Positions 24,804 to 55,811 of a stretch of 64,000 bases of DNA are shown in pieces. Position 1 is the first letter of the stretch, and each line of letters begins with the position of its first letter. The notes beneath the pieces were generated by a model. It was not told the origin of the DNA and searched no databases. It was given only the letters and a program-made list of their open reading frames with translations. Source of the DNA: Heteronotia binoei (taxonomy: Eukaryota); assembly GCF_032191835.1 (NCBI RefSeq), contig NC_083232.1:92752001-92816000 (forward strand), read 5' to 3'. The position numbers and the translations under genes are program-made.

Positions 24804-24804
24804 C

Positions 24805-26515: not shown

Positions 26516-26539
26516 TCAAATTTTATCATGGCACCAAGC

Positions 26540-28357: not shown

Positions 28358-28645
28358 ACCTCTAGGGTCATCTAGTCCAACCCCCTGAATAAAGCAGGAA
28401 ACTCACAAACACTGCCCCCTAAATTCACAGGATCTTCATTGTCAGATGGCCATCTAGCCTCTGTTTAAAACCCTCCAAGGAAGGAGAGCCCACCACCTCC
28501 CCAGGAAGCCTGTTCCACTGAGGAATCGCTCTAACAGTCAGGAAGTTCTTCCTAATGTTGAGCCAGAAACTCTTTTGATTTCATTTCAACCCATTGGTTC
28601 TGGTTCTACCTTCCGGGGCCACAGAAAACAATTCCACACCATCCT
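28358..28645 (-). mobile_element. CR1 3' fragment (paralog 52543-52830)
   Basis: ELFSVVPEGRARTNRLKLNQKSLWLNVRKNFLTVKAIPQWNRLPGEVVGPPSLECFKQRLD in the paralog. Confidence 0.88.
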
Positions 28646-30574: not shown

Positions 30575-30890
30575 GTGGAATCCCTTGGTGGTCTCCATGC
30601 AAATACTAATCCTACCTGATCTGGCTTAGCGAATGAGATCTGGTAAGATGGGGCCAGCCTGGGCTATGCGGATCACAGCAAACCTCCTAGCGGAAAGGGC
30701 CATCATGTCAAAGCTGACTTAAGACGCCCCGTGGGGTTCTCAGGTCAAGAGACGCTGAGGGGTGGTTTGCTGCTGCCTGCCCCCACATCACACCCCTGGT
30801 ATGCCTTGGAGGTCTCCCATCCAAATACTAGCTGGCTTCGCTTCTGCGATCTGATGAGATCAGGCTACCGTGGGCTACCCAAGTCAAAGT
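30575..30890 (-). mobile_element. Two 5S-derived SINE copies (paralog 54785-55090)
   Basis: The minus strand reads GATCTCATCAGATCGCAGAAGCGAAGCC..TAGTATTTGGATGGGAGACC. Confidence 0.7.
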
Positions 30891-33645: not shown

Positions 33646-33721
33646 ATAGGTTCTTGCCCCTACAGATATTATGATTATGATTACTACTACTACTACTACT
33701 GCTACTGCTATTACTATTATT

Positions 33722-34495
33722 ACAGTGTGCGATTGCAATAAAAAAGGCCAACGCCATGCTGGGAATTATTAGGAAGGGAACTGAAAACAAATCAGCCACT
33801 ATCATTTTGCCCCTGCATAAATCGATGGTGCGGTCTCATTTGGAATACTGTGTATGATTCTGGTCACCGCACTTCAAAAAGGATATTATAGCACTGGAAA
33901 AAGTCCAGAAAAGGGCAACTAGAATGGTTCAAGGCTTGGAACACTTTCCCTATGAAGAAAGGTTAAAACGCTTGGGGCTCTTTGGCTTGGAGAAACGTCG
34001 ACTGCGGGGTGACATGATAGAGGTTTACAAGACTACGCATGGGATGGAGAAAGTAGAGAAAGAAGTACTTTTCTCCCTTTCTCACAATACAAGCATTCAT
34101 GGGCATTCAATGACATTGCTGAGCAGTCGGGTTATAACAGATAAAAGAAAGTACTTCTTCCCCCAAAGGGTGATTAACATGTGGAGTACACTGCCACAGG
34201 AGGTGGTGGTGGCGGCTACAAGCATAGCCAGCTTCAACAGGGGATTAGATAAACATATGGAGCAGCGGTCCATCAGTGGCTATTAGCCACAGCATAGTGT
34301 TGGAACTGTCTGGGGCAGTGATGCTCTGTATCCTTGGTACTCTGCGGGGGCGACAAAGTGGAAGGGCTTCTAGTCCCACTTCTGAACCTCCTGATGGCAC
34401 TTGGGGTTTCTTTTCTTTTTTTTTGGCCACTGTGTGTCACACAGTGTTGAACTGGATCGGCCACTGGCCTGATCCAACATGGTTTCTCTTATGTT
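33722..34495 (+). mobile_element. Second CR1 3' fragment inserted into a microsatellite upstream of exon B
   Basis: MVQGLEHFPYEERLKRLGLFGLEKRRLRGDMIEVYK. It is absent in unit 1. Confidence 0.95.
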
Positions 34496-34514
34496 TTTAT
34501 TATTTAGACTGCAG

Positions 34515-34597
34515 ACTCCAATCGATATGATGAAGTATGGCGTTACATCGTTGAAAACGACCTCATCGTCGAGGATCTGGAGGAGGTCTCCAGTGAG
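34515..34597 (+). CDS. Exon B (unit 2)
   Basis: CTGCAG|...GAG|GTAAGG, 83 nt: (D)SNRYDEVWRYIVENDLIVEDLEEVSSE. Confidence 0.6.
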
Positions 34598-35466
34598 GTA
34601 AGGGACCGAGAGAGGAATACAGACCCACAGGCAGGCAGTGAGAACCTGCTGGGGCCTGGAAATGAGTCAGGGAGGGGGGAAAGGCACAACAGAAGTCCTC
34701 TTGTGGAAGCTGTCGATGAAGAAGAATGCCTGGGAAGACAGCGGAAATATACATTCTTTGATAATAAACAAGAACACCAGAGATCCTTTTTGGATGAACA
34801 CCTCAACTGAACGTTCTTTGTGCTAATGCTGTGACCCATCAGTGTACTAAGGGAACTTCCACAAACATATCAAGCTGCCTTTAGTAGACTGAGACACTTG
34901 GTTTGATGCTTACCTTTCGTTTGACTTAACTTTGACTGGCTGTAGCTCACCTCTTCCCCTGTACCTGATGCCTGAGATCTCCTTAAGTGGAAAATGAACA
35001 GGAGGCCTCCTGCATGCCGAACAGGGGCTCTACCCATTGAGCCCTCCTACCAACCAACCATCCACTGTGAAACCAGATCAGCCTCTGGGGTTGCCTTAGG
35101 CAGAGTCAGATCATCGTTCCCCACTAGCACTCCTGGGCCTCTGGAAGAGAGAACTTTGAGATCCTTCAAAGATGCCAGGAACTGAATAGGGGACCTTCCG
35201 TACATGCTCTGGTGCCGAGGTGCAGCCCTCCATGTTCTAAGCAGACTTCAGTAGTCCACAGCATGACTGGATGCGGGGTGGGGGCTGAATGTCTTCTCCA
35301 GAGCCACCTAAGAAGTAAATAGCCAAGACCAGAAGAGGTCTGTGACACCTCCTTGGAGGTAGCAACGCTTGCATGGAAATGACAGAGGGGTTCATGCTGT
35401 TCACTGTCTCAGAATATCTGCTCTTGCAAAAAGTCTGAAGCTTTCCTTTGTTTCCTCACCTTCCAG

Positions 35467-35562
35467 ACCTCCATATCAAGCTGCTCAACGACCAGCCCCG
35501 TGGTCTCCAGCAGTGACTCCATCCAGCGATCTGATGGAGTCCATGATACCATCCTGCTGGAG
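35467..35562 (+). CDS. Exon D (unit 2)
   Basis: 96 nt, phase 0-0: TSISSCSTTSPVVSSSDSIQRSDGVHDTILLE. Confidence 0.55.
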
Positions 35563-36435
35563 GTAGGCCAGGCCCAGTCCCAACTCCTCATCCTGTCAGT
35601 GACTGCAAGGAGACCAAGAGGGTTGGGGACCTGCCCTCCTTGATGGTTTCTCCCCACCTTCTTTTACTCCTTCTGTGTGCAGAAGCTCTCCTGAGCCCTC
35701 CAGAGAGCCCAGTCTTCCACAAGTCCCTCTCATCCATGGGTCACTTCATGACTATGCGGATGAATATGTTTGGATACAGGCATAGCTGCTGTGCTCCCTT
35801 TGGTACCCTGTGCATAATTCTGGGCTCTCCACTTACAAAAGGAGCTCGCAGAGTGCAGCAGTGAAAAGTTCAGAAAGGACCAGCCATAAGAAGCCAAATG
35901 CTGGAACTCCTTCCCTACAGGAGAAGGCTAAAACGTTTAGGCTTTTCAGCTGAGGAGAAAGTGGAGTGAAAATGCATGGGAAGTAGCTAGCCCAAGTGTC
36001 TGCTTTGACTAGGCAGCTTCCCTGGGATCCCCTGTGGATCCTCCTGCTTTGGAGACAGACACAAGATCCAAAGAGATCTGAACCCTGCAGCGACAGCTTC
36101 TCCTCCTTTCCAGAAGAAGCTGCTGGTGCGAGGAACAGATTGTTCGGTCCAGGAGGGAATCCTCCCCGCTTTCCCAGCTGGCTGTGAGAATGCTGATTGG
36201 CTGGCCTGAGGGACAATCCTAAGGCCCTGCCCCCTTGGCTCGATGGAGTCTTGCTTGGCTGGCCTTTACAATGACCTCCAAGCCATCTCCCTGCCTCTCA
36301 TCTGCCTGGCAAGAGTACTGCATGCGTCTTCCAGAACTGTGCCCCATTTCCTTCAGATAAATCCAGTTCCCAGAATTCCCCGCTCAGAAGCCTTCTTAGC
36401 ACAGGCTCATTTGGTGGCCTCTCTTTTGATTTCAG

Positions 36436-36620
36436 ACCCAGCCTGCACCGGAGAGGCCCACGCCAGCACCCCTCCCCCAGGAAACCAGCAGTGAGGGGGA
36501 TCAGCCCACACCATCGGCTGATCCGCCAAATAACACCAGGCGCCCCTCCTGCTGGTCATTTCTATCTCGCCTGGGGGGGTGGGTGGCCGGAAGATCTAGC
36601 GCCTCTCCGAGAAACATCGT
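36436..36620 (+). pseudogene. Exon A (unit 2), truncated and fused to antisense DIRS sequence
   Basis: TQPAPERPTPAPLPQETSS...SASPRNIV, then a switch to sequence matching 43915 onward. Confidence 0.55.
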
Positions 36621-37615
36621 CAATGGCTCAGGCAAGCTTGCTCCTCTCAGGTTCCACTGGAGCTGAAACTGCCTTAATTCTCTTCCTAGGCTGGGGAAGG
36701 AGTGGGGAGGCTGAAGCTTTGGAAGAACTACCGTATTTTTCGCACCATCAGGCGCTCCGGACGATAGGACGCACCTTCCTGGGAGGGGGCGATCCGCTGC
36801 CTCCGATCCCGGGGCTCCCCCGCGCCTGCCTGCCTGGCTCCAGCTTTTTGCAGCAAGCGCTGGGATCGCTCCCTCCGCCCTCCGATCCCAGCGCTTGCTT
36901 TAAGAGTCACAGCTGAAGCCAGTCTGTCAGGCAAGGAGAAAGCACCCATCCCCTCCGCAAAGCCAGCGCTTCACCGCCGCGCACCAGCTCGATCACGGGC
37001 ACCGGCGCGGCAGGGGAGGGGGTGGCCCGCCGGTCTCCTTGGCAACCCCATAGAGCAAGGCCGACTCCCCCAGGAGCGCCATCCCCCCACACCGTCCCGC
37101 CTGGCCGCTGCGGCTGTTGCTGCTGCTGCCGGAACCCAAGCCCAAATCCGGCTCGCCGACGCCCTCTGCTCTAGCGCTGCGTGCTGCATCCCACGACGGG
37201 TCACTGGGGGACCTCTCCATCAGTATCCTGGCGAGAAAGCGGGGAGAGAAGACGGCTGAAAGAGGAGGCGGCGGCAGAGAGGGCACGCACCCAGCCAGCC
37301 AGACACTCGCTGCCGAGGGGAGGGGAGCCCAAGAGGAAGGGAAGGAGGCACGCCAGAGAGGAGGGGGGGCGGCAGGGAGAACGCCAGCGGAGAAATGCCC
37401 AATTGAGACACGCAGCCAGCAAGGGCTGGGCGAGGAGGGCGAGCCTCCCCACGGCCGGCTGGGCTGCCCTTCGGCCCGGGGGAAGCAGGGGGGGGGGAGG
37501 ATCTGGCGCAAGGATTTCCTGGCCCCTCGACCTGCGGCACCCTCACAGCCCGAGAGCTTCACCTGGGCCTCCTCCTCCTCCGCCTTCCTTCTTCGGCCAG
37601 CTCCTGGCCGATGCC
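36621..37615. mobile_element. Displaced copy of the DIRS ORF1 flank plus the left arm of the Tc2-like foldback element
   Basis: 36621-36950 matches 43915-44250, including TA+CCGTATTTTTCGCACCAT at 36729. About 36975-37615 is the reverse complement of ~45385-46010. Confidence 0.85.
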
Positions 37616-37644
37616 ACTACTACTGCTACTGCTATTACTATTAT

Positions 37645-38418
37645 TACAGTGTGCGATTGCAATAAAAAAGGCCAACGCCATGCTGGGAATTATTAGGAAG
37701 GGAACTGAAAACAAATCAGCCACTATCATTTTGCCCCTGCATAAATCGATGGTGCGGTCTCATTTGGAATACTGTGTATGATTCTGGTCACCGCACTTCA
37801 AAAAGGATATTATAGCACTGGAAAAAGTCCAGAAAAGGGCAACTAGAATGGTTCAAGGCTTGGAACACTTTCCCTATGAAGAAAGGTTAAAACGCTTGGG
37901 GCTCTTTGGCTTGGAGAAACGTCGACTGCGGGGTGACATGATAGAGGTTTACAAGACTACGCATGGGATGGAGAAAGTAGAGAAAGAAGTACTTTTCTCC
38001 CTTTCTCACAATACAAGCATTCATGGGCATTCAATGACATTGCTGAGCAGTCGGGTTATAACAGATAAAAGAAAGTACTTCTTCCCCCAAAGGGTGATTA
38101 ACATGTGGAATACACTGCCACAGGAGGTGGTGGCGGCGGCTACAAGCATAGCCAGCTTCAACAGGGGATTAGATAAACATATGGAGCAGAGGTTCATCAG
38201 TGGCTATTAGCCACAGCATAGTGTTGGAACTGTCTGGGGCAGTGATGCTCTGTATCCTTGGTACTCTGCGGGGGCGACAAAGTGGAAGGGCTTCTAGTCC
38301 CACTTCTGAACCTCCTGATGGCACTTGGGGTTTCTTTTCTTTTTTTTGGCCACTGTGTGTCACACAGTGTTGAACTGGATCGGCCACTGGCCTGATCCAA
38401 CATGGTTTCTCTTATGTT
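37645..38418 (+). mobile_element. CR1 3' fragment (duplicate of 33722-34495)
   Basis: Near-identical ORF at 37848-38210. Confidence 0.95.
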
Positions 38419-38437
38419 TTTATTATTTAGACTGCAG

Positions 38438-38520
38438 ACTCCAATCGATATGATGAAGTATGGCGTTACATCGTTGAAAACGACCTCATCGCCGAGGATC
38501 TGGAGGAGGTCTCCAGTGAG
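38438..38520 (+). CDS. Exon B (unit 3)
   Basis: 83 nt with AG|...|GTAAGG: (D)SNRYDEVWRYIVENDLIAEDLEEVSSE. Confidence 0.6.
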
Positions 38521-39389
38521 GTAAGGGACCGAGAGAGGAATACAGACCCACAGGCAGGCAGTGAGAACCTGCTGGGGCCTGGAAATGAGTCAGGGAGGGG
38601 GGAAAGGCACAACAGAAGTCCTCTTGTGGAAGCTGTCGATGAAGAAGAATGCCTGGGAACACAGCGGAAATATACATTCTTTGATAATAAAGAAGAACAC
38701 CAGAGATCCTTTTTGGATGAACACCTCAACTGAACATTCTTTGTGCTAATGCTGTGACCCATCAGTGTACTAGGGGAACTTCCACAAACATATCAAGCTG
38801 CTTTTAGTAGACTGAGACACTTGGTTTGATGCTTACCTTTCGTTTGACATAACTTTGACTGGCTGTAGCTCACCTCTTCCCCTGTACCTGATGCCTGAGA
38901 TCTCCTTAAGTGGAAAATGAACAGGAGGCCTCCTGCATGCCGAACAGGGGCTCTACCCATTGAGCCCTCCTACCAACCAACCATCCACTGTGAAACCAGA
39001 TCAGCCTCTGGGGTTGCCTTAGGCAGAGTCAGATCATCGTTCCCCACTAGCTCTCCTGGGCCTCTGGAAGAGAGAACTTTGAGATCCTTCAAAGATGCCA
39101 GGAACTGAATAGGGGACCTTCCGTACATGCTCTGGTGCCGAGGTGCAGCCCTCCATGTTCTAAGCAGACTTCAGTGGTCCACAGCATGACTGGATGCGGG
39201 GTGGGGGCTGAATGTCTTCTCCAGAGCCACCTAAGAAGTAAATAGCCAAGACCAGAAGAGGTCTGTGACACCTCCTTGCAGGTAGCAACGCTTGCATGGA
39301 AATGACAGAGGGGTTCATGCTGTTCACTGTCTCAGAATATCTGCTCTTGCAAAAAGTCTGAAGCTTTCCTTTGTTTCCTCACCTTCCAG

Positions 39390-39485
39390 ACCTCCATACC
39401 AAGCTGCTCAACGACCAGCCCCGTGGTCTCCAGCAGTGACTCCATCCAGCGATCTGATGGAGTCCATGATACCATCCTGCTGGAG
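39390..39485 (+). CDS. Exon D (unit 3)
   Basis: 96 nt, open: TSIPSCSTTSPVVSSSDSIQRSDGVHDTILLE. Confidence 0.55.
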
Positions 39486-40340
39486 GTAGGCCGGCCCAGT
39501 CCCAACTCCTCATCCTGTCAGTGACTGCAAGGAGACCAAGAGGGTTGGAAACCTGCCCTCCTTGATGGTTTCTCCCCACCTTCTTTTACTCCTTCTGTGT
39601 GCAGAAGCTCTCCTGAGCCCTCCAGAGAGCCCAGTCTTCCACAAGTCCCTCTCATCCATGGGTCACTTCATGACTATGCGGATGAATATGTTTGGATACA
39701 GGCATAGCTGGTGTGCTCCCTTTGGTACCCTGTGCATAATTCTGGGCTCTCCACTTACAAAAGGAGCTCGCAGAGCGCAGCAGTGAAAAGTTCAGAAAGG
39801 ACCAGCCATAAGAAGCCAAATGCTGGAACTCCTTCCCTACAGGAGAAGGCTAAAACGTTTAGGCTTGTCAGCTGAGGAGAAAGTGGAGTGAAAATGCATG
39901 GGAAGTAGCTAGCCCAAGTGTCTGCTTTGACTAGGCAGCTTCCCAGGGATCCCCTGTGGATCCTCCTGCTTTGGAGACAGACACAAGATCCAAAGAGATC
40001 TGAACCCTGCAGCGACAGCTTCTCCTCCTTTCCAGAAGAAGCTGCTGGTGCGAGGAACAGATTGTTCGGTCCAGGAGGGAATCCTCCCCGCTTTCCCAGC
40101 TGGCTGTGAGAATGCTGATTGGCTGGCCTGAGGGACAATCCTAAGGCCCTGCCCCCTTGGCTCGATGGAGTCTTGCTTGGCTGGCCTTTACAATGACCTC
40201 CAAGCCATCTCCCTGCCTCTCATCTGCCTGGCAAGAGTACTGCATGCGTCTTCCAGAACTGTGCCCCATTTCCTTCAGAATTCCCCGCTCAGAAGCCTTC
40301 TTAGCACAGGCTCATTTGGTGGTCTCTCTTTTGATTTCAG

Positions 40341-40580
40341 ACCCAGCCTGCACCGGAGAGGCGCACGCCAGCACCACCTCCCCAGGAAACCAGCAGTGAG
40401 GGGGATCAGCCCACACCATCGGCTGATCCGCCAAATAACACCAGGCGCCCCTCCTGCTGGTCTTTTATATCTCGCCTGGGGGGGTGGGTGGCCGGAAGAT
40501 CGAGCGCCTCTCCGGGTAACATCGTCAGGCGGCTGAGGCGTTGGGCAGCCCGGCGAGGAGGTCGTGTGCACCCTCAATAA
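40341..40580 (+). CDS. Terminal exon A (unit 3), intact to the stop codon
   Basis: 240 nt: TQPAPERRTPAPPPQETSSEGDQPTPSADPPNNTRRPSCWSFISRLGGWVAGRSSASPGNIVRRLRRWAARRGGRVHPQ*. Confidence 0.55.
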   Translation, partial: TQPAPERRTPAPPPQETSSEGDQPTPSADPPNNTRRPSCWSFISRLGGWVAGRSSASPGNIVRRLRRWAARRGGRVHPQ

Positions 40581-41699: not shown

Positions 41700-44019
41700 C
41701 TAACCACTGCTGAGGGCATCTAAAGCACTTCTGCGTTGTCCTCCCATCCTTTGGAGATCCTTTGCCCATGGCAAACAGATCCATCTTGCCATACCTGTGG
41801 CACAGGATCTAAAATGTCCAGCACGCACTCCGTCTGGTCTATCGTTTATCTGCTCAGCCAGTCTGCCAAGACATCGTCCTTCCCGGCTATAAGGACAGCT
41901 TTGACCGAAAGAAGAGTGTCCTCTGCCCAAGCCATCAGTGTATGAGCTTCCTGGAACAGGGACGTGATCCTGGTTCCTCCTTGTCCATTCGCATAGGATT
42001 TTGCCATCACACTGTCGCTTTTCACTAGTACGTGTTGAACTCTGAGCAAGTCTTGGAAATGCAGAAGGCCTATACGAATCGCCCATAGCTCTAGCAAATT
42101 TATGCTCCTCTTGGCTTCCTCCAAGTTCCACTGTCACTGTGTCATCAGGCCCTGGCAGTGTGCTCCCCTGGCAGTGTGCTCCCCTGAAAGACTGGCATCC
42201 ATCGTCATGGTGATTCTAAGTGGTTCCCGGATTGGTACACCCCGAACAAAGTGGGAGGGAGCTCTTCACCATTGAAGCCGAAGCTGGAGTTCTGTTGGCA
42301 GCTTCACCCACTTGGGCAGTTTGAAGACGATAATCCGTTGAAAGGGGATAAGAAAGTGCTGTAATGTCGAGTGTGAAAACATGCCCAGTGAAGCACATCC
42401 TGGCAAGATACCATCATGCCTAGAAGTTGGGCCAATGTCATCACCTGAAACCTTGGCAACAAAAGAACTTCATCCAGGAGAACTTGAAATCTCCCCAGTC
42501 TGTCGGCAGACAGGAACACTTTGTCCTGTTGGGTGTTTATTAGCACCCCCAGGTGAACCAACCGTTGTGATGGGACCAGGTTGCTCTTGGTCAGGTTGAC
42601 TAAGAAGCCATGGGCCTGCAGGGTCCCCACCATGAGATCGGTTGCCTCCTGGCTCTGTTGCCACAATGGAGCCCTGACCAGAATGAGGATGCACACGACC
42701 TCTTCACTTGGCTGCCCAACTCCTCAGCAGCCTACAGATGCTCCCCAAAGAGCCTTCAGATCTTCCGGCCATTTCCCCCTCCTCAGGCAAGAAAGAAATG
42801 GCCAGTAGCAGGAGGGATGCCTGATCTTACTGGGTGACTCAGCTGATGTTGTTGGTTCATCCCCTCCCCCCTGCTGCTGGTTTCCTGAGAGGGTGGTGCT
42901 TGCATTGGCCTCTCTGGTGCAAGCTGTGCCTGAAGTAAAAAGAGAGGTAACCAGATGAAGCCATGAGCCCGCAGGGTCTCCACCGTGAGTTCACTTGCCT
43001 CCTGGCTCTGTTACCACGATGGAACCCTGACCAGAATGAGAATGCACATGACCTTTTCGCTTGGCTGCCCAACTTTTCAGCCGCCTGCAGATGCTCCCCA
43101 AAGAGCCTTCAGATCGTCCGGACATTTCCCCCTCCTCAGGCAAGAAAGAAATGGCCAGTAGCAGGAGGGATGCCCGATTGTAATGGGCAACTCAGCTGAT
43201 GTTGTTGGCTGATCCCCTCCCTTCTGCTGCTGGTTTCCTGGGAGGGTGGTACTTGCGATCGCCCCTCCAATGCAGGCTGTGCCTGAAGTCAAAACAGAGG
43301 CCACCAAATGAAGCTGTGGGCCTGCAGGGTCTCCACTGTGAGTTTGGTTGCCTCCTGGCTCCGTTGCCACGATGGAGCTCTGACCAGAAGGAGGATGCAC
43401 ACGACCTCTTCGCTTGGCTGTCCAACTCTTTAGCTGCCTGAAGATGTTCCCCGGAGAGGCTCCAGATATTTCAGCCATTTTCCGTCTCAGGCAAGAAAGA
43501 AATGGGAAGCAGCAGAAGGGATGCCCGATGGTATAGGGCGACTCAGCTGGTGTTGTTGGCTGATCCCCCCCACCCCCCAGCTAGTGGCTGCCTGGGTGGG
43601 TGGTGCTTGCGTTGGCCTCTCCGGTGCAGACTGTGCCTCTGTTTGATTAATACCCATTTCAGGCTTCATTCTCTCCGATCCCGAAGAGAGGCTGGGGACT
43701 AAACCCTCATCCTCCTTGCGCGTGGTTGAAAAGTCCAGCTCCCAGAGCACCTTGGGCAGGAGTTCAGAAGAAACCTTTGCTGAGAAAAGCCTAGACTGTT
43801 CTATTGTAGTCACCTCCTCCTCCTCCTCTGATAGTTCCCCTTCCTCCCTCACCGAGGACTGGCTAGAGTCACCGGAATCATCCTCGTCCTGGGAACTGTC
43901 TCTGGGAGACTCAGTGGCTAAGGCAAGCTTGCTCCTCTCAGGTTCCACTGGAGCTGAAACTGCCTTAATTCTCTTCCTAGGCTGGGGAAGGAGTGGGGAG
44001 GCTGAAACTTTGGAAGAAC
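41700..44019 (-). mobile_element. DIRS-type retrotransposon, decayed: ORF1 part, RT C-terminus, RNase H, start of the methyltransferase-like domain
   Basis: ILVRAPLWQQSQEATDLMVGTLQAHGFLVNLTKSNLVPSQRLVHLGVLINT (RT); SINLLELWAIR...VLVKSDSVMAKSYANGQGGTR...WAE...IAGKDDVLADWLSR (RNase H); DLFA motif; acidic ORF1 EEGELSEEEEE...LFSAKVSSELLPKVLWEL. Confidence 0.88.
42610..43665 (-). repeat. Three tandem ~353-bp units of [exon A homolog + DIRS RT fragment]
   Basis: The marker C(T/C)GCAGGGTC(C/T)CCAC recurs near 42616, 42970 and 43322. Each unit contains ...KRRGRVHP-like exon A sequence. Confidence 0.85.
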
Positions 44020-44479
44020 TACCGTATTTTTCGCACCATAAGGCGCTCCGGACGATCGGACGCACCTTCCTGGGAGGGGGCGATCCGCTGCCTCCGCCTC
44101 CGATCCCGGCGCTTCCCCACGCCTGCCTGCCTGGCTCCAGCTTTTTGCAGCAAGCGCTGGGATCGCTCCCTCCGCCCTCCGATCCCAGCGCTTGCTTTAA
44201 GAGTCACAGCTGAAGCCAGTCTGTCAGGCAAGGAGAAAGCACCCACCCCCTGGCCCCTCGACCTGCGGCACCCTCACAGCCCGGGAGCTTCACCTGGGCC
44301 TCCTCCTTCCTTCTTCGGCCGGCTCCTGGTCGATGCCCCCCGGGCACCCCGGAGACTAACACCCCAGAGGAGCCCGACGGAGAGAAGGGGGAGGCCTCTT
44401 CCTTGCGGCCCCGGGAGGAAGCTGACAATCTGCTGGAGCCCTGAAGCGGTCTTCAGCCTCCCTGCCCCCCCCCCGCCAC

Positions 44480-45350
44480 CTTGACAAAGAGTGAGATGTC
44501 GTGCTCTTGCTTCTCTCCTCCCAAAGCCTTCCCCTGGCGCCGCGTCCTCCTCCTCCCCTCCCCGCACGTCGTTGACCCCCACAGCCGGCTCAGCTTCCCC
44601 TTCTACAGTCTCCTCCTCGAGGGGCTTCCGACACGGCGGCCTCCTGTTCCCACCCCATCGTAGCCCTGCTCCACTCGTTGGGCTCTTCTCTCAAGCCGGC
44701 AGCCTCCACCAGTTCTTCGCCACCCCAGGGCTGCTGCTGCTGGCTGGCTCCCCCTCGAGCTGTGCCCCCGCTGCGCTTCTCTCGCCGCCGACCTCTTCTG
44801 CCGCCTCCCCTCCTTCCCCCAGTCCATCTCGCCCGACAGCGGCGCTTGTCTCCTCTATAGCGCCTTCTCCCGGTCTGGGTGCACTCGACGGGCTTTCTGC
44901 CATCCTCGGCGGCTCTTCTGCTGGGGCAACCTCGGCGGCAGCCTCCTGTTCCCACCCCATCGTAGCCCCGCTCCACTCGCTGGGCTCTTCTCTCCCACCG
45001 GCAGCCTCCGCCAGCTCTCGCTCAGTGCGGGCTGCCTCCGAGGACTCCTCTGCTTCTGGAGGCCTCCCTCCGTCACCTGCCTCTTCCTTCTCTCCGTCGG
45101 GCTCCTCTGGGGCTCCTCTGCCCTTGTCGACCTCTCCTTCCGAGCTGCCCTCTAGGCTGTGCCCGGCCGCTGGGGTCGTCTAGCTCTTGGCGCGCTGCCG
45201 CGGGACTCCCCCCCCCACCCCCTCACCCGCCGGCTCCCCTGCCTTGAGTCCTCGGTCGGAGACTGCCAAGCCCCGAAGGGTAGCCACCTTGATCCTGGAG
45301 CTCTGCCCTCCTTCCCCGCCCGGTCCCACCCAAGGGCCTCTTCCCTCCCT
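44480..45350 (-). pseudogene. CLIC6: Captured fragment of CLIC6-like exon 1, with frameshifts
   Basis: A minus-strand Glu/Gly/Ala-rich reading ends ...VGVNDVRGGEEEDAAPGEG..GGEKQEHDISLFVK, followed immediately by GT at 44479-44478. As I recall it, human CLIC6 exon 1 ends RVNGRREDGEASEPRALGQEHDITLFVK. About three frameshifts are present. Confidence 0.75.
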
Positions 45351-46011
45351 CCAGTTAGTCTCCGGGGCGCCCGGGGGGCATCGGCCAAGAGCCGGCCGAA
45401 GAAGGAAGGCCGAGGAGGAGGAGGAGGCCCAGGTGAAGCTCCCCGGCTGTGAGGGTGCCGCAGGTCGAGGGGCCAGGAAATCCTTGCAACAGATCCTCCC
45501 CTCCCCCGCTTCCCCCGGGCCGAAGGGCAGCCCAGCCAGCCGTGAGGAGGCTCGCCCTCCTCGCCCAGCCCTTGCTGGCTGCGTGTCTCAATTGGGCATT
45601 TCTCCGCTGGCGTTTTCCCTGCCGCCCCCCCTCCTCTCTGGCGTGCCTCCTTCCCTTCCTCTTGGGCTCCCCTCCCCTCGGCAGCGAGTGTCTGGCCAGC
45701 TGGGTGCGCGCCCTCTCTGCCACCGCCGCCTCTTTCAGCCGTGTGCTCTCCCCGCTTTCTCGCCAGGATGCTGATGGAGAGGTCCCCCAGTGACACGCCG
45801 CGAGATGCAGCGCGCGGCGCTGGAGTAGAGGGCGTCGGCGAGCCGGATTTGGGCTTGGGCTCCGGCAGCAGCAGCAGCAGCGGCCATGCTGAGCAGCGCG
45901 GGGGGATGGCGCTCCCGGGGGAGCCGGCCTTGCTCTATGGGGTTGCCAAGGAGACCGGCGGGCCACCCCCTCCCCTGCCGTGCCGGAGCCCGTGATCGAG
46001 CTGGTGCGCGG

Positions 46012-46330
46012 CAGCTGCCCTATAAAAGGCAGGGAGACGCCGGCTGGAGCGAAGCAGAGCCAGCCGGGAGACAGCGGTAGCAGCAACAGAGCGCCCGCAG
46101 CCTTCACCTTCGCCACGGGCCCCCGGCACGCCTCCCACTGGCGGCAGCAGCAGCCACGACGCCCGCATGGTGCAGCTCAGCCCCGCCGCAGCGCCCGCCC
46201 TCCCGCTCCAGCCGCCCGGCAGAGCCATGCTCTACGGCCTCGGAGCCCCGCTCAGTGCCCCCAGCAGGTCCATTGCTCCCGCTCGCCAGCCGGCCTCTGC
46301 ACTCCGAGGCAAGGAGAAAGCACGCTCCCC
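46012..46330 (+). promoter_or_regulatory. CpG-rich promoter/first-exon-like segment inside the TIR element arm
   Basis: CAGCTG at 46012, TATAAAA at 46021, a GC-rich leader, and ATG at 46167 (MVQLSPAAAPALPLQPPGRAMLYG). Confidence 0.35.
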
Positions 46331-46623
46331 TCTCCACAGCCGGCGCTCATGAAGCACTGGCTTTGCAGAGGGGGTGGGTGCTTTCTCCTTGCCTGACAGA
46401 CTGGCTTCAGCTGTGACTCTTAAAGCAAGCGCTGGGATCGGAGGGCAGAGGGAGCGATCCCAGCGCTTGCTGCAAAAAGCTGGAGCCAGGCAGGCAGGCG
46501 CGGAGGCAGCGGATCACGCCCCCCCCTGGAAGGTACGTTCCTTTGCTCCATAAGATGCACCCACTTCCCCCTTCCCATTTTTTTTGGCGGAAAAGTGCGT
46601 CTTATGGTGCGAAAAATACGGTA

Positions 46624-47100
46624 AATCCCTTGGTAAGTTCTCCTTTTAGCCACTGCAGGAGATTGGCTTTGGCATCTTCCCCTATCAGGTCTGGATCAGA
46701 TTCACTGGCTCTCTGTCCCAAAGGAGCCCCCAATCGTCTAGGCATGCCTGGGTCATTGTAAGAATGTTCTAGCCCTTCAGCCATCTTGATAGAGGGAGGC
46801 TGCAAAAACCAAAGTAAAAGCAGCAGTGCAGGTATTAGTGAGACTAAGCCAGAAAAAGGTTGCCCCAGACTTATTTCTTCTTTCATCCCTCCAAAGGGAG
46901 AGGGGATACTCGTTCCCTTACCTCTCCATGCATTCACTATACACCTTCGAACCTGGGGCCTTCTGCAGGCCAAGTAGAGGCTCCTCCACTCAGACACAGC
47001 CTCTTTCCTCCCGGTTGCATTTTTCTCCAGTCCTCCCACCCAGACTATGGGGGGGGAGCTTTTCCGCTCTGGAGAAGCCCGTCCCCTCCTCCCTTCCCAC
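46624..47100 (-). mobile_element. 5' part of the same DIRS element (ORF1 start)
   Basis: ATG at 46784: MAEGLEHSYNDPGMPRRLG...LLQWLKGELTKGF joins in frame with 44021 and below across the empty TA site. The 5' boundary is uncertain. Confidence 0.7.
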
Positions 47101-47789
47101 CAGCCGCCGAAGCCTCTTACAGCTTCATACCATCTGAGCAGCTATGGCTGAGGCTGTTGGCGTCGCAGTCATCTGTGGAGCACTGCTAATGTGGTGCTGC
47201 GTAGAACCACGTGACAGGCTCCCCGCTTCCCGCTCAAACAATGAAGCGGGGGCAGGGGGAGAGGCCCGACTCCATGTAGGGCTCTGCACAGGAGTCCGTC
47301 TGCCAGCTGACCTTGTCAGGGCCAAACCTGATTGGAAAACCAATCCTGTGTAGGAGGAAGAGCCTAATCCCATCAGTGAGCAACTTTCCCACTTCTAAGA
47401 ACTACCGGAGAACTACTCGGGTGAGAGGAGTCTCTCCAACAGCTCCTCCAGAGGAAAGGAGGTCCTTATATCCAATGTGACCAGAGGGATGGGAAATCCC
47501 TATATCCTTAGACTAGGGGTGTGGCAAGTCTCCGGTGAGAAGGCTAATGAAGAGAGCTCTTCCCGGAGACCCTCACCCACGCATGCCCCTAAGTCAAGTC
47601 ACTTTGACTCCTCTCTTGTTTATTGCTCATTTTATTGTCATTATGATTTCAGGCCCTACAGAGGAGAGGTGCAGCAAGGTTGAACCACTGCAGGGGAACA
47701 TAGGCAATCCCAAGGATGGGAGACGGATCCAAAGAAAATACAGGGTCCTGCTCAACGGGGGTGGTAGGGGTTGGACCGGTCAGACATGT

Positions 47790-48200
47790 ACCTTAGAAAG
47801 TGCTGAATGTGATAGCTGCCTTACAGGCGCCTCCCTCCAAGAGTGAGGCACAACCTATCATTGGCTTGAGGGGCTTCTGGAGACACCCAACTTACCAGGA
47901 GGCAAGAGAGAAAGCTCAGCTGAAATGGGGGGAGCATCAGCAGGCAGCCCTAGCAGATGTGAAGTCTGCTGCAGAAGCTGCTATGCCCTCAGGTCCTTGA
48001 ATGAAAGGACTGCCAATTGAGCTACAAGTATCTCCTGATCAAGAGGGGGCTGTATTGAGTTCATGGCAGAAGGGACAGGGAGAAAAGCGTGTGCCATTAG
48101 GCTTTTGGTCACAGAGGCTGTGAGACACTGCGGAAAACTATTTTCCCTTTGAACCCCAATTGCTTGCATGCTACTGGGCTCCAGTTGAAACGGAGAGACG
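47790..48200 (+). mobile_element. Class III (ERV-L-like) endogenous retrovirus pol fragment
   Basis: LQAPPSKSEAQPIIGLRGFWR..TYQEAREKAQLKWGEHQQAAL...PLGFWSQRL.DTAENYFPFEPQLLACYWAPVETER parallels ERV-L 'PTTKKEAQRLVGLFGFWR...PLGFWSKAL...NYSPFEKQLLACYWALVETE'. Confidence 0.85.
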
Positions 48201-48459
48201 CCCGGTTGATCCCGGGACAGAAGGGATGGCTCCTGGATATCGAGTAAAGCACCAGGAGCTATTTATTGGGTGGCCATAACCGGACAACTTCTATAGGCTT
48301 AGAAGTAGCAAGGAAGAATAACACGTTTCTATGTATCTTTTTCAGATGGCGGAGCACCTCAATTCAATGTGTCAATATGTTTTCTTTGTCCATATGACTA
48401 TTTTTGTTGTTCATTGTAGCAGAACACAGGAAAGAATGGGCGATCACCAAGGGGTGGAA

Positions 48460-48969
48460 GGTAGTGGGAAATGCGGAAGATCTCTGTACATCGAGGAGAT
48501 AGGAGTGGTGACTCACTCATTCTGACCCCTGTGTCTCCAAATGACAGCACCAAGCTGCAAAGGGTTAATTGCCCTTATCTAGTCTTATGTTTCTTCAGCT
48601 GGTGATGCTGTGGAACCTCACAGATGAACCAGTCCCAGCTGAAGCTGATTATTCCAGGAAGTATCAATGCATCCTAAGTGAGCGAGGTTTGGGGGAGCTT
48701 TTGTGTTCTGTGCAGGAGCTGAGGGAACCGCTGCCTGACGACTGACAGACGCTCGAGGAACGGACGCTTGCTGAGAGGGAGAACAAGAGGAACCTCCCCA
48801 GCAAAAGGGACAAGCTCACTCGTGAGAAGCGTATTTGTGTTGTAAACGTCGAGCTAGTTTTGACCTTGTAAACTTTGGGTTAGATTGTCTTTGTGATGTA
48901 AATAAAACCTGTTTTCTCTTCACAAACTTGTATTTGCCTGCTGAAGTTTAAAGAACATGGGCATTTACA
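48460..48969 (+). mobile_element. ERV 3' LTR (~510 bp)
   Basis: It is preceded by the polypurine tract AAGGGGTGGA, starts (G/T)GTAGTGGG, contains AATAAA and ends TTACA. Confidence 0.7.
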
Positions 48970-51900
48970 CCCCTCTGCTTTCAAAGCTGGTTCCTCCCTG
49001 GCATCAGTCCTGCGATTGCCAAAATCTAGAGTCCAGCCAGTATAGCCAATACGGCACATCTAATGGCACAGCTACAAGAACTGCCCCATAGTCAAAACTG
49101 ATGCTGGAACAAAAGCTGCATCACCCAATTCCATGGTATTTCTACCTTCGATTAAATAATGTGAAGGCTCCCATTCAAACTTTGAAAAATTTAACGCCCT
49201 CCATTTCTGAAACACTCATAGACAACATGGGACACAACTCCAAAGGTTTGACTTCCAATAGTAACAACATTTGAGTTCAACAAGATGCTGACAAAGTCTT
49301 ACGTTTTTTCATGACAATGGCAGACAGATTACAAAACTATGATTACCAGTGACCAATGGAATCAAATTTGGTCTTCTCCAAATTTGGTTAAACTCTCCAA
49401 TCATTATTATGATGAAACGGCAGTATTACAAAATCCTCACTCGTTGGTCCCTTACGTCCAAGAAACTGGCTTTAATCTCACCCGCTCATTCTCCCTTGCG
49501 TTAGAAGCAATGTGGGTACTTAGGCTCCTGTGGCACATTGCTGGTGGGCTGCAAAGTTATAGAAACCTTTTGGCATGACATTCTTCTACAAATACAGCTG
49601 CTTATCACAGAATACAGGACTTCACTCTCACAGGAAGGGATCTTCCTTAACATCTGGCAGGATAAATCCGGACAATCAGGTGGGACTTAATACTGAGCCT
49701 TGTATATACACGCAAAAACATATATATAGAGGCCTTTTGGGTTGCAAGGCCTGCTCCCGGGAGATTTCCCTGCAAAGGAGTCTTTGCAAGGTCAGATTTT
49801 TTCCCCTTTCAGAACAACATGGGCATAATCAGAAATGCCTCTGGCGATTACTATTTTATAGTAAGAGCTGTTCAACAGTGGAATCAGCCACCTAGAGAGG
49901 TCGTGAGCTCCCCCTCACTGGCTGTCTTCAAGCAGCAGCTGGACAAACCCTTGTCAGGGGGATGCACTAGGCCCATCCTTATTGAGCAGGGAGTTGGACT
50001 AATGGCCTGTTTGGTCCCAACCAACTCTGTGATTCTATGATCTCCAGAACAAAATTCGAGCCCAGGAACGTCTTCTAGACCAACAAAAATGTTGTGAGTC
50101 AAAGCTCACTTCATCCAGTATCTTTCCAGAGTATAGCTCTTCTTCACATTTGGATTAATAAAAGTTTATGCCCTGAAAAGTTTTGATCCTTTTTGAGGCA
50201 GCTGAATGGGCTTGAATCTTGTTCTGCTAACTCTGGATTCGCCAGCCTTTCTGAGCCTGCAGCCACATCAGGAATCCCAGCACAGGGCAGCAGGAACAAC
50301 CACAACACGGCTGTTGCAGGAGTCGAAGCCAGTCACAAAATAACAGCCAGTAGTGCAGTTATGTTTAACTATAATAGTAACACTGCAACATTTCAAGCAA
50401 AAGCTCTATCCAGTTTGCTGCAGTGGTTAAGTGCACGGACTCTTTTCCCGGAGAACCAGTTTTGATTCCCCACTCCCCCATTTGCAGCTCTTGGAATGGC
50501 CTTGGGTTCAGCCACAGCTTTTGTAGGAGTTGTTCTTGAAAGGGCAGCTGCTATAAGAGCTCACTCTGCTCCACCCACCACACAGGGTGTCTGTGGTGGA
50601 GGGGGCAGGCAGGACGGTAAAGGAGGTAGTAACCGTTTGAGACTCTTGAGATTCAGAGTACAGGGCAGGATATAAATCCAATATCTTCTTCACTCAAATT
50701 TTATCATGGCACCAAGCCAGTAAAAACAGTAACTATGATAACCAGTATGGACAAATTTGTTAAAATATAAAAACCATAGTCCAAGTTTAAATAATGTTTT
50801 CTTTTTGGATGCAGTAATGAGATGCACAAAATTTAGCTACAGTTTGATTAGCATCTGATTTTTATTTGAAAGTGGATAATTGGCATAAGCTACACTTTCC
50901 CCCAGCAAGCTGGGTATTCATTTTACTGACCTCAGAAGGATGGAAGGCTGAATCAACCTTCAGCCGGCTACCTGAACCCAGCTTCCACTGGGATTGAACT
51001 CAGGTCATAAGCAGAGCTTGCACTGCAGTACTGCAGCTTTACCACTCTGCACCACCGGGGAAGGCAATGGCAAACCAGCCCATTAAAAAGACTGCCAAGA
51101 AAACATGATGTGGCATCACCCCATGGGTCGGAAAGAACGTGATTCTTGCACAGGGGACTACCTTTATCTTTTAATTGACATAATCAGAGTCCGTTAGACC
51201 AGGCATTACCTTAAGCAGGGGTAAAATATATTTGTCGCAAACCAACTTATACCCTGGGCACCTGAGGAACACGTGTTCAATGGTATCAACTTCCCCCAAA
51301 TCACACTGACAAAGTCTCTGATTGAAAAGTATCTTCCTGTATCTCCCCTCAAGCACAGCCGAGGGAAGGGCCGAGCAGCTTGCTAGGGTGAAGGCTTTTC
51401 TCTTCTTGTGGTCATCTAAGTTGGAAAGGTAAGCAGGAGGGACAAGTCAGTACCTGATTTGCTCAGGTGCTAAATAGGCTGGGTGTTAAGCAAGACTGGA
51501 GTGTCTCTGTGTGTCCATTACTCTTTAATTTTTTTTGTAGCAGGAGCTCCTTTGCATATTAGGCTACAGCCAGCTAATGTAGCCCATCCTCCAAGAGCTT
51601 ACACGGCTCTTCTTACAGGGTCTATTGGAAGCTCTAGGAGGAATGGCTACATCAAAGGGGTGTAGCCTAATATGCAAAGAAGTTCCTGCTCCTTTGCTCC
51701 AAAAAAACCCCCTGGTTTCAGCACTGCCTTGGCCTGATCCCTGCTAAAGGCCAAAACAGCTTGGGGAGGAACTCCAAGAAAATTTAGTTTCTTCTGGACT
51801 GCCTTCAACCACTTAGATTGAAAATCATCTAATATCAGAGTTGATGTTAAGCCAGTACCTAAGGGAAGCCAGGGTAACTCTAGCTTCTACCGTTTTCAGT

Positions 51901-54900
51901 CTGATCACAGCAATAGACACACCTCTTGGGACCTGAAGAGCACCCCTTAAGGATTTAGCCCGAACCCATTTGAGAGGAAGAAACGATGAAGATGAAGATG
52001 AGGGGTCCAGAAAAAACACCATAAGCATTTGAGAAATTACTTTCGGCTGAAATAATATTTGTGCTGCTGGTATGAAATGGGCATCTTTTGGGCATAGAAA
52101 TTTATGTATCACATTTTGCAGCTCTTTCTCCTTGTACTGCTACAAATTCATTACGGGCGTTCCTTGCCCCAGAGGCTTCAAGGGCCATGCCCAGATATTA
52201 GTAGCTAGATGTCTGCTCTAATGGATGTCCATCAATAGCCCAGAATATCTTCTGTTGCCTATTTCCAAAACCATAAATTTGGCTATTTCTAATTTCTTAA
52301 GGCTGATTGGTGTCCTAGCTAGGATCACCACGTCATCTGCACATAGGAGAATAGAGATGTGCTGTTGGTGTATTTTAGGAGGGTGTAAANNNNNNNNNNN
52401 NNNNNNNNNNNNNNNNNNNNNNNNNNNNNNNNNNNNNNNNNNNNNNNNNNNNNNNNNNNNNNNNNNNNNNNNNNNNNNNNNNNNNNNNNNNNNNNNNNNN
52501 NNNNNNNNNNNNNNNNNNNNNNNNNNNNNNNNNNNNNNNNNNCTCTAGGGTCATCTAGTCCAACCCCCTGAATAAAGCAGAAACTCACAAACACCGCCCC
52601 CTAAATTCATAGGATCTTCATTGTCAGATGGCCATCTAGCCTCTGTTTAAAACACTCCAAGGAAGGAGGGCCCACCACCTCCCCAGGAAGCCTGTTCCAC
52701 TGAGGAATCGCTTTAACTGTCAGGAAATTCTTCCTAACGTTGAGCCATAAACTCTTTTGATTTAATTTCAACCTATTGGTTCTGGCCCTACCTTCCGGGA
52801 CCACAGAAAACAATTCCACACCATCCTCTATATGAAGGAAGGGAGGGAGTAAGGAAGGAGAGAGGGAGGGAGGGGAGGCAGAAAGAAAGCAACTTTAACT
52901 TTAAATGCATTCTCCAAGCCATTGGTGGTGGGGACTGTGAGATCCACATGATATGTGTGAAAGAACCACAGGTAGCTCCTGAGCCACAATATGGCCACCC
53001 CTGATGTAGTCAAGCATTCTCTTTACAACAACATCAAAGCAAGATGTCTTCATGGCCACAAAGTCCCTTCCTTGCTCTCTACCCTCAGCAATGAGGGTTC
53101 AGCAGAATATTGTTTCCATCCATGAGAGTTTCAGTTATGATAACTAATACCAGATACATCTTTTCTCCATGCATCTGTCAGATAAAACCATCTCCGCCAT
53201 TGGCCATCACCTTGTCTTGGAGTAGGAAACCCCCATGAGCTAATTAAGTGATGTAATATAAATTCTGGGAGGGGGAAGGGGGCTTTCAGCAAATAGTATT
53301 TATGACGAGGAACCATGTCAGGCCTTTGAAATATTTCTGCCTCTGAAGAAGAAGCAGATCATGAAAGCGTTTCAGAAGGTGGGTGCAGGCTGCATCGGAG
53401 AACTGCGTGAAGATCTTCCGTTCCAGAAGCAGAAAGAGAAGGCCATAAAATTAAAGAGATTGGGGGGAGAGGGAGGTTTTCAAAAACATTCACTTGCTAC
53501 ATAAATTCATTGCAGAAAGTAACCCACAGCATCACCTCCTGCCAATCTCATTTGGTTTCTCTCTTCCCAGGGATGAGGCCAGGAAACGGAAACATTAGCA
53601 CACCTCTATAGTCCAAGGATAGGCAATCTATGCGCCCCCCCGCCCACCCCACACAGAAATACCATGGCTACATGACCATTTTGGTGTCTAGGGAATAATG
53701 GAAAGAAATGACAGCTGTGCTTGGCCAAAGACAATGGGGGCAAGCCAACTCCCAGCTCATGCTCAACACAGCTGCTTCTGTGTGTGCCCAAAAGCCAGTG
53801 ATGACCATAAGCTGCATCTGTCACCTTCTCCTAGGCCACTGTCCTCAGTGGTGCTCAGCTGGATTGCGCAGGAAGAGAACGAGCCCTGCTTGCGGAGAGG
53901 AATAGTCTGGTGTGCATCTCTTTGGAATTGGGTTGCCTGTTCCTGCTCTGGAAGTACATTTCACTCCTCTACTCATAGTCTCTGCTCCCCACCACCACCA
54001 CCAAATCAGCTGCCAGCACAATGGATAGGCAACTTCCTTGCAACTGTAGAAGAACCCAGGACATTACCCCAACATCTTCCCTCCTCTGCCTTTTGCAGGG
54101 ATGAAGGTCTAAGCTTTCTGGCAGTGGTCTATGTCAGGGGTGGCCAAGGGTAGCTCTCCAGATATTTTTAGNNNNNNNNNNNNNNNNNNNNNNNNNNNNN
54201 NNNNNNNNNNNNNNNNNNNNNNNNNNNNNNNNNNNNNNNNNNNNNNNNNNNNNNNNNNNNNNNNNNNNNNNNNNNNNNNNNNNNNNNNNNNNNNNNNNNN
54301 NNNNNNNNNNNNNNNNNNNNNNNNNNNNNNNNNNNNNNNNNNNNNNNNNNNNNNNNNNNNNNNNNNNNNNNNNNNNNNNNNNNNNNNNNNNNNNNNNNNN
54401 NNNNNNNNNNNNNNNNNNNNNNNNNNNNNNNNNNNNNNNNNNNNNNNNNNNNNNNNNNNNNNNNNNNNNNNNNNNNNGGTGGAAAGAAAGGAATTTTAAC
54501 TTTAAATGCATTCTCCAAGTCAGCGGCTGGCTTGGCGTGTAGAAGCGATTTAAAGAGACAAATGCCTTCTCCAAGCTAGCCAATGGGGTTGTGGGAGCTT
54601 TGAGACTGGCTATTCAACATTACAAAATATGAACTGCACAGAGATTTTCAGCCTTCAATCATTAAGCCTCAAAACTGCTAAACATCTTTTGGTTCTGCCA
54701 TCAAGCTGCAGCCACTTACAGCAACCCCCGTAGAATTTTCAAGGCCAGAGACACGTAGAAGCGGCTGCCTCTGTGTAGAGACCGTGGAATCCCTTGGTGG
54801 TCTCCATGCAAATACTAATCCTAGCTGATCTGGCTTAGCATCTGAGATCTAGTAAGATGGGGCCAGCCTGGGCTATGCGGATCACGGCAAACCTCCTAGC

Positions 54901-55811
54901 GGAAAGGGCCATCATGTCAAAGATGACTTAAGACGCCCCGTGGGGTTCTCAGGTCAAGAGAAGCTGAGGGGTGGTTTGCCGCTGCCTGCCCCCACATCAC
55001 ACCCCTGGTATGCCTTGGAGGTCTCCCATCCAAATACTAGCTGGCTTCGCTTCTGCGATCTGATGAGATCAGGCTACCGTGGGCTACCCAAATCAAAGTA
55101 AACATCCTTGTAAAGGGTGACAAAAATCTCTAGAATAACTCTCTTAATCTTATGGAATGAGACACCCACACACACACGCAGAAACACACACACACCCTCC
55201 CCGCTTAGCATCGTGCTGCAGAGGATAAAAAACAACCCTAATCCAGGGAGGGAATAGAGAGCAGCTCCAGGGCATGGCTCTTTTGGGTTCTTATCGCCTT
55301 AAGACTGCAATCACGCACGCTAAATAATGCAGCTTCAATCCACTTTTATTGCAATTTCCAACTGGATTTTGCCGTGTGAACTGGCAAGACCCAGTATGAG
55401 ACTGCACTGAAAGTGGATTGAAATGGCACTATTTAGCATGTGTGATGGCAGCCAAAGTTTCACTGTCCCCGTCAGGGGTTGTGGGGAAATAGGAGCAGGA
55501 GAGCTATCGCATCCTGGGCTGAGTCCAGGCCCAAAAGACTGGGGTGTGCATTATTTCACTAGCGACACCGATGGGGAAGGGATTCCTGGTCAGCATGAAG
55601 CAATCTTCTGACCAAGATTCAGTGACTGAAAAGCCCCTTCCTTCCATTTTATGCTTCTGCAGCAGCAACGGACGGGGTGGATTCCCCACAGGTGGAAAAC
55701 TCCAGAACCCATTGTGATGCTGCCTCGGAACCTGGCCGGGCTGGGCAGATGGGAGATTCACCCACAGCCAACTGCCATTTGATGCCAGGGCTTTGTCGAG
55801 GAGACAGTTAC
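48679..55811 (+). repeat. Segmental duplication, copy 2 (~7.1 kb)
   Basis: Colinear with 24511-31603; it ends at the N-gap 55812-55911. Confidence 0.95.

Follow-up and report, generated by a model that had tools for sequence, protein, structure and literature searches.

A probable Pack-TIR element with a broken copy of CLIC6 exon 1 in the genome of the gecko Heteronotia binoei

What is a stretch resembling the first exon of CLIC6, the gene for chloride intracellular channel 6, doing between the ends of a small transposon in a gecko genome? This question was raised by a window of 64,000 nucleotides of Heteronotia binoei DNA (contig NC_083232.1 of assembly GCF_032191835.1, positions 92,752,001 to 92,816,000 of the forward strand; positions given below are those of the window unless a locus is named). 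An earlier note, made from the sequence of this window, had described a putative Tc2/Kanga-like transposon with terminal inverted repeats (TIRs) that had captured a fragment of CLIC6 exon 1, i.e., a Pack-TIR. Our analysis arrives at the same identification, a Pack-TIR with a broken copy of CLIC6 exon 1, with a probability of about 0.85; this figure excludes the fold-back origin that is considered below. The observations behind it are a target-site duplication of TA together with an empty site, terminal arms that exist in multiple copies, homology to CLIC6 with well-defined limits, and mirror colinearity of the two halves of the element.

The element stretch (44020-46623) opens with TA and CCGTATTTTTCGCACCATAAG, and closes with the reverse complement of this sequence and another TA; the two dinucleotides occupy 44020-44021 and 46622-46623. 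The TIRs are perfect over 21 nt (44022-44042 and 46601-46621), or over 23 nt including TA, and reach 27 nt if one mismatch is allowed. Three occurrences of the 21-mer were counted in the window, compared to none in 100 shuffles. None of the 12 open reading frames (ORFs) of the element has a Pfam match, hence a transposase is absent from it. Ten of the element ORFs were looked up exactly in a protein collection and none was present, and a string search of the literature with the TIR sequence produced no match. Perfect TIRs, a TA duplication and the absence of a transposase had all been proposed in the earlier note, and all three are borne out. The element belongs to the TA-inserting (Tc1/mariner-type), non-autonomous TIR elements and resembles a miniature inverted-repeat transposable element (MITE).

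The ends were also compared, on 43601-49600, with Logan contigs of three sequencing runs matched by the right flank (contigs labelled X1, X2 and X3 below), all of them metatranscriptomic RNA libraries. It should be noted that contigs from RNA libraries are no proof of transcription, and that the flank contigs are approximately 2-3% divergent from the window (the RNA library of a relative). The summed contig depth was 130-245 on 44001-44200 and 46401-46800 and close to zero on 44201-46400. Since the terminal arms are deep and the interior has almost no depth, the interior is not family sequence: transposon termini enclose foreign DNA, which is the hallmark of a Pack-TIR. In five X2 contigs, whose upstream sequences are unlike one another, the match begins at 44020, and one contig represents a short family member in which 44071 is joined to 46502 through CCT. 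The empty site is seen in a 315-nt X1 contig, where 44019 is joined directly to 46622; 2602 nt are skipped, 2 nt are shared and a single TA is left. A TA-flanked terminus of a related element (TCGTATTTTTGCTCCATAAGATGCACC...) was found in Gekko kuhli, approximately 10.6 kb downstream of CLIC6 exon 1 (L001:21649-21695). Judging from this terminus, the family or a sister family is present in another gecko genus.

Within the element lies a copy of CLIC6 exon-1 DNA of approximately 750 bp, which comprises the 3' two-thirds of the exon and is antisense to the plus strand. Its minus-strand frame ends ...GGEKQEHDISLFVK at 44480 and is followed directly by GT (44479-44478), as the earlier note had read it. 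These last 14 residues are identical in CLIC6 of G. kuhli and Paroedura picta. The longest open piece (44700-45179, minus strand, 160 amino acids) was used as a query in a phmmer search of 1.84 billion representative proteins, among which just two matched, both of them gecko CLIC6 exon 1 (E = 5.2e-20 and 2.6e-11). The P. picta match is annotated as CLIC6 (XP_077198760), and the CLIC-like_N Pfam domain comes directly after the exon end (...GGEKQEHDISLFVK/AGSDGESIGNCPF); the other match is a "hypothetical protein" of G. kuhli, KAL8190552. The latter record (P0001, L001:10001-11065), which carries the label "UNVERIFIED_CONTAM: hypothetical protein", is CLIC6 exon 1 read past the donor; this is apparently a mis-annotation, not contamination.

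At the nucleotide level, we compared the window with CLIC6 loci of G. kuhli (L001), a Logan contig (L002), Eublepharis macularius (L003) and P. picta (L004). In blastn searches, 44478-45212 matched exon 1 of all four gecko loci with 68-77% identity, and every match stopped at 44478, i.e., at the exon end plus GT. For the rest of the element, no match to these four loci was found except a short match of the transposon terminus at the end of L001. In E. macularius, a calcipressin (RCAN-family) gene is located upstream of CLIC6 in head-to-head orientation. Counted over aligned columns, identity to the cargo is 76-80% for the three gekkonid sequences, which are 80-82% identical among themselves, and the cargo and the gekkonid sequences are all 68-72% identical to Eublepharis; the distance from the cargo to geckos is similar to distances between gecko genera. 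This pattern suggests that the source was a gekkonid-type CLIC6, presumably that of the host itself. Protein searches with exon 1 of P. picta and of G. kuhli returned the same five gecko proteins, without a CLIC6 from the same species. Taken together, the homology statistics and the four orthologous loci support the claim of a captured CLIC6 exon-1 fragment.

The captured exon is no more than a dead passenger: the ATG is missing, two frameshifts and an in-frame stop break the reading frame, and the donor context is degraded. An orthologue-guided alignment shows that it begins at approximately codon 118, with about 117 codons lost, and that the homology to real gecko CLIC6 exon 1 spans codons ~118-355. 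The in-frame TGA is due to an internal duplication of 83 nt (Table 1). The number of gap columns is 133 for the cargo aligned with gekkonid orthologues, compared to 12-24 among the three closest real genes, and the CpG observed/expected ratio is 0.71, compared to 0.86-1.02 in real CLIC6 exons. With this ratio and a GC content of 0.68, the cargo is CpG-rich, as had been stated; the interior has a GC content of 0.66-0.73 and CpG observed/expected ratios of 0.42-0.74, versus 0.31-0.32 in the flanks. The acidic Gly/Ala/Glu reading of the minus strand stands as far as the acidic appearance is concerned, but it is not a single ORF: three frames are needed, and stops are found inside. A functional CLIC6 exon 1 would have an intact ORF from the ATG, a conserved donor and linked exons 2-6; the cargo has none of these.

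The 3' limit of the copy deserves a closer look, because the earlier note had seen there a "retained donor plus intron bases" and a "live splice donor". The GT is indeed kept; the intron bases are not recognizable. The 117 nt that follow the exon were compared with intron 1 of four geckos and gave scores of 14-17, versus shuffle means of 16-17, i.e., no similarity, whereas the introns of G. kuhli and P. picta scored 92 when compared with each other. A part of this 117-nt stretch is an inverted second piece of the same exon. The donor context is AAG/GTGGCGGGGG (GTGGCG) in the cargo and AAG/GTAAG(G/A)CACG in all four real genes; the conserved positions +3, +4 and +5 are lost. No contig of the three RNA-library runs falls on 44401-45200, and no run was matched when the cargo served as the query in a search of sequencing runs. 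The idea of a live donor is therefore not supported, and an effect on CLIC6 is not indicated, given the broken state of the exon copy and its degraded donor context; none of the three RNA-library runs has a contig covering the copy, which speaks neither for nor against its expression. The exon end is not followed by exon 2, which excludes a spliced mRNA as the source. A processed retrocopy was rejected for this reason, and no poly(A) is present.

The cargo is not a single clean insert. A self-comparison of the element revealed a decayed palindrome, together with ~1.1 kb of further GC-rich filler (u, X' and Y' in Table 1); the filler amounts to ~2.1 kb in all and is GC-rich. The mirror blocks are strictly monotonic in order. 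Outward from the centre (~44436-44479), the right arm runs from the exon 3' end to codon ~118, u, B', X', Y', A' and the TIR, and the left arm runs through c2, c1, B and A to the TIR, in the same order and the opposite orientation. Compared to the right arm, the left arm has three large deletions (~620, 241 and 891 nt), and A and B overlap by 3 nt at their junction. Block c2 scored 46 against the exon end of G. kuhli, a value reached by none of 500 shuffles (1-3 of 500 for the other three geckos), and it holds exactly the 14 nt that are deleted from the main cargo. Within Y', 46307-46347 repeats the inner end of A' in inverted orientation. Comparisons of u, X' and Y' with CLIC6 upstream and 5' exon regions of the four geckos were not convincing, as the scores were compositional. 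The element is thus a degenerate large palindrome, with a short left arm mirroring a long right arm.

Table 1. Features of the Heteronotia binoei element and of its partial second copy (window positions; pairs of ranges are mirror pairs)
Feature	Position	Strand	Basis and remarks
Left TA target-site duplication	44020-44021		sequence; empty-site contig, 44019 to 46622, 2 nt shared
Left TIR, 21 nt, perfect	44022-44042	+	5 X2 contigs with unlike flanks begin matching at 44020
Arm A, family-typical subterminal region of MITE-like element	44020-44251	+	inner 135 nt 99% complementary to A'; summed contig depth 130-180
Block B, inverted copy of B'	44249-44360	+	87% overall; outer 59 nt 98%
c1, inverted copy of cargo 45079-45112	44362-44395	+	27/27 perfect, 32/34 overall; reads sense CLIC6 exon 1
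c2, second sense-on-plus piece of CLIC6 exon-1 3' end	44386-44435	+	local alignment to G. kuhli exon end
Palindrome centre/spacer	44436-44479		contains CTGAAGcggtCTTCAG and a C11 run; minus-strand GT at 44479-44478
Main cargo, CLIC6 exon 1 from ~codon 118 to last codon (K of LFVK), pseudo-exon	44480-45227	-	5-nt and 14-nt frameshifting deletions; TGA 44692-44694
Internal direct duplication of 44936-45018, 83 nt (90%)	44634-44716	-	inserted in cargo; carries in-frame stop
u, filler between cargo and B'	45228-45353		no convincing similarity to CLIC6 5' regions of four geckos
Block B', mirror of B	45354-45477	-	self-comparison
X', GC-rich filler	45478-46012		inverted in copy 2 too, 92.5%
Y', GC-rich filler	46013-46368		TATAAAA 46021-46027 (+); in copy 2 only its last 19 nt
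Arm A', with right TIR 46601-46621 and right TA 46622-46623	46369-46623	-	self-comparison; contig depth
Mirror pair, terminal repeat	44020-44046 / 46623-46597		self-comparison
Mirror pair	44060-44097 / 46538-46500		self-comparison
Mirror pair	44110-44251 / 46511-46369		97%; inner 135 nt 99%
Mirror pair, B and B'	44249-44360 / 45477-45354		self-comparison
Mirror pair, c1 and cargo	44362-44395 / 45112-45079		inside cargo; 27/27 perfect
Copy 2	36620-37615	+	left flank (97%) and arm A, 19 nt of Y end, then X and B mirrored; no CLIC6 part

A second, partial copy of the element (copy 2) is present in the window. Its first part, 36620-36954, repeats the left flank and arm A, X and B follow in mirror orientation (92.5%), and the copy stops abruptly at 37615, with unrelated repeat sequence beyond. 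The left flank is common to the element and copy 2; therefore, both represent the same insertion, copied by segmental duplication. The divergence between them is 2.7% for the flank and A, 6.0% for X and B, and 3.9% for X and B without CpG transitions. On the side of the left flank, the order in copy 2 is A-X-B. Two origins of this copy can be envisaged. Either it is a left arm in which X is still found between A and B, in support of a palindrome that was once more complete, or A and A' recombined and produced a flipped isomer; the sites in B that are diagnostic for an ancestral left arm versus a flipped isomer are mixed. In addition, a 218-nt X2 contig covers 45218-45438 at ~92%, a hint that u with B' exists elsewhere.

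How this architecture arose has to be reconstructed. Fold-back or template-switch repair synthesis probably copied a transposon end and the adjacent filler back on itself; we infer this type of synthesis because the mirror colinearity, the short overlaps at junctions and the patchwork of pieces fit it. The unstable palindrome would then have lost most of one arm, and a family transposase may have mobilised the element in trans. As to timing, acquisition of the cargo before the insertion at the present site has close to an even chance in our estimate. The parent is located beyond the distance of <15 kb that is typical of in-situ cases, and capture elsewhere followed by transposition is therefore mildly favoured.

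The most serious competitor differs from this explanation only in the order of events, and we regard it as quite possible, if short of probable: a palindromic MITE inserted first, and a central break was repaired by template switching, with CLIC6 exon 1 and GC-rich DNA copied into the gap, so that the packed element has always stayed in place. In animals, Pack-TIRs are mostly single-copy and arose by gap filling, with breakpoints biased to the interior of the transposon (Tan et al. 2021, Nat Commun 12:4280; PMC8277862). Such gap filling is also consistent with the position of the filler exactly between the two arms, with the fact that the present insertion and its segmental duplicate are all that is seen, and with a cargo free of contig cover in the three runs. 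However, gap-filled Pack-TIRs usually copy from less than 15 kb away, and there is no CLIC6 locus within 44 kb on one side and 17 kb on the other; in the same survey, distal parents accompanied the transposed multicopy cases (PMC8277862). Furthermore, the arms closely match numerous family contigs, suggesting recent activity of the family.

A more specific birth of the element may be imagined, although we consider it doubtful. The element could have been born as a long perfect palindrome, through hairpin-primed (fold-back) copying of a single transposon end beside captured DNA. Because the homology ends no more than 2 nt from the end of the exon, the break would be placed at the 3' margin of CLIC6 exon 1, whose GC skew is strong; it may have coincided with an R-loop or a transcription-associated lesion. 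Such copying would have made the second TIR and thereby rendered a one-ended fragment mobile again together with its cargo, and one arm would later have collapsed by deletion. If true, this is a route to Pack-TIRs distinct from central gap filling.

The same sharp 3' limit could be taken as a sign of an RNA template: what was copied during repair would then be either a transcript still unspliced or exon 1 set free as a splicing intermediate. The homology ends within 2 nt of the boundary of exon 1 and intron 1, and no similarity to the intron is found beyond it. We nevertheless consider this source improbable: a junction with exon 2, a poly(A) and hallmarks of target priming are all missing, GT is present after the exon, the copy lacks its 5' end, and a mirror duplication made at the DNA level surrounds it; the start of the host intron may simply have been lost among small deletions and the G/C run.

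Could the exon be genuine, and merely bracketed by two independent inverted MITE copies? The preserved exon end with its GT and the look of a CpG island are in line with this possibility, which is nonetheless extremely unlikely. About 117 first codons and the ATG are missing, frameshifts and a stop are present, the exon piece is the only part of the element that matches CLIC6 loci, and the whole 2602 nt are absent from the homologous site with one TA. Moreover, six-frame motif scans and tblastn with exons 2-6 found none of these exons anywhere in the window, in agreement with the earlier note; the 44 kb available downstream of the donor exceeds the 23-24 kb that intron 1 measures in two geckos. 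The window was accordingly rejected as the true CLIC6 locus.

An equally remote alternative is a chance resemblance of a purine- and GC-rich stretch to acidic low-complexity protein, or else a palindromic assembly artefact. Owing to the purine-rich strand, an acidic or Gly-rich appearance is common to the three minus-strand frames; moreover, the last 27 residues had no match in a phmmer search of PDB, and the 10-residue match is not significant by itself. Palindromes, for their part, can arise from fold-back chimeric reads. Both readings are at odds with E = 5e-20, with matches to CLIC6 only, with a colinear nucleotide alignment to four orthologues, and with arms that are unequal and diverged, have unique flanks with the TA duplication, and end at positions backed by independent contigs.

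Several points weigh against the preferred reading of the element as a Pack-TIR. Evidence for the empty site comes from a single contig (depth 4.5, placed at 90% likeness), which extends for just 25 nt on one side and could derive from a paralogue, not from an allele or orthologue. A second copy that combines the CLIC6 cargo with different flanks was not seen in the window or among the contigs of the three runs. The origin and age of the cargo rest on orthologues from other genera. Instead of host filler, blocks B, u, X and Y may represent the interior of a family member that is long and rare, and copy 2 can equally be explained as the isomer flipped by A/A' recombination.

Some features of the element and its surroundings stand apart from these questions. 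Inside Y', 46010-46200 (+) has a promoter-like layout of CAGCTG, the TATAAAA and an ATG at 46167, which points away from the CLIC6 piece. The region around copy 2 is a mosaic of segmental duplications; copy 2 itself is bracketed by a 2.9-kb direct duplication (33692-36622 and 37616-40527, 98.3% identical). A large duplication, with copies ~24.17 kb apart and 94-98% identical, comprises 24506-31603 and 48672-55811, and N-masked runs are found at equivalent positions in both copies (28223/52390, 30011/54172 and 31647/55812). Just left of the element, 42604-43638 consists of about three tandem units of ~353 bp (82-84% identical), with inverted relatives at 22394-22665, 36400-36622 and 40305-40576. 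The right flank, 46622-49486, has near-continuous cover by low-depth X1 contigs with 97-100% identity, which could be an intronic/pre-mRNA signal or DNA carry-over, and a stretch of ~44 nt in it (46947-46990) has a high summed depth from many X3 contigs (organism B) and is probably a widespread short repeat. A Pfam scan of the cargo ORF and 17 other ORFs detected only an unrelated reverse transcriptase fragment at 32570-33145 (+) (RVT_1 domain, E = 7e-12), a retroelement remnant.

Plant Pack-MULEs and Pack-TYPE elements often contain GC-rich 5' parts of genes and several fragments per element, and they are frequently multicopy and transcribed. Like the gecko element, they are non-autonomous TIR elements with gene fragments; however, Pack-MULEs depend on a Mutator transposase and have duplications of 9-10 bp, unlike the 2-bp TA duplication found here. 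In animals, a survey of 100 genomes found 370 Pack-TIRs, of which 115 were TcMariner elements and 13% were exonic; almost all were single-copy, with four multicopy cases, and gap filling or fork switching (FoSTeST) was proposed as the way in which they form (PMC8277862). The gecko element shares with these the TIR ends enclosing a duplicated host fragment, the TA-duplicating type, the exonic, non-coding character of the fragment, and the short junction microhomologies and other signs of template switching (PMC8277862). It differs in that its filler of ~2.1 kb comes from several sources and looks large compared to the short captures of that paper (305 bp for rice Pack-MULEs, given for comparison), that the filler is a decayed mirror duplication including the cargo, and that the parent is not within 15 kb (PMC8277862). 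In its main text, that paper makes no mention of "gecko", "lizard" or "anole" (PMC8277862). Foldback-type elements, such as Ssk-FB4 of Drosophila, also have long inverted arms prone to rearrangement, and the capture by Ssk-FB4 was attributed to stalled forks and template switching, with transposition as the subsequent step (PMC8277862). In contrast to the gecko element, with arms of ~230-255 bp, TA duplications and a broken exon fragment, FB4 has repetitive TIRs of ~700 bp, duplications of 9-10 bp and a nearly complete, expressed gene.

When set beside authentic gecko CLIC6 exon 1 (P. picta XP_077198760, E. macularius and G. kuhli KAL8190552), the cargo has codons ~118-355 and the exon boundary in common with it, and differs in the missing start codon and first 117 codons, the frameshifts, the stop, the 83-nt duplication, the GTGGCG donor, the lower CpG observed/expected ratio and the absence of downstream exons. 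The kind of event, a Pack-TIR, is already well documented; what sets this case apart is the large filler, which has several sources, together with the palindromic layout. The element adds a squamate case to the small catalogue of animal Pack-TIRs, with an exonic cargo, an empty site and a mirror architecture that records repair events. If other genomic copies share its junctions, it would be among the few animal Pack-TIRs shown to have moved with their cargo.

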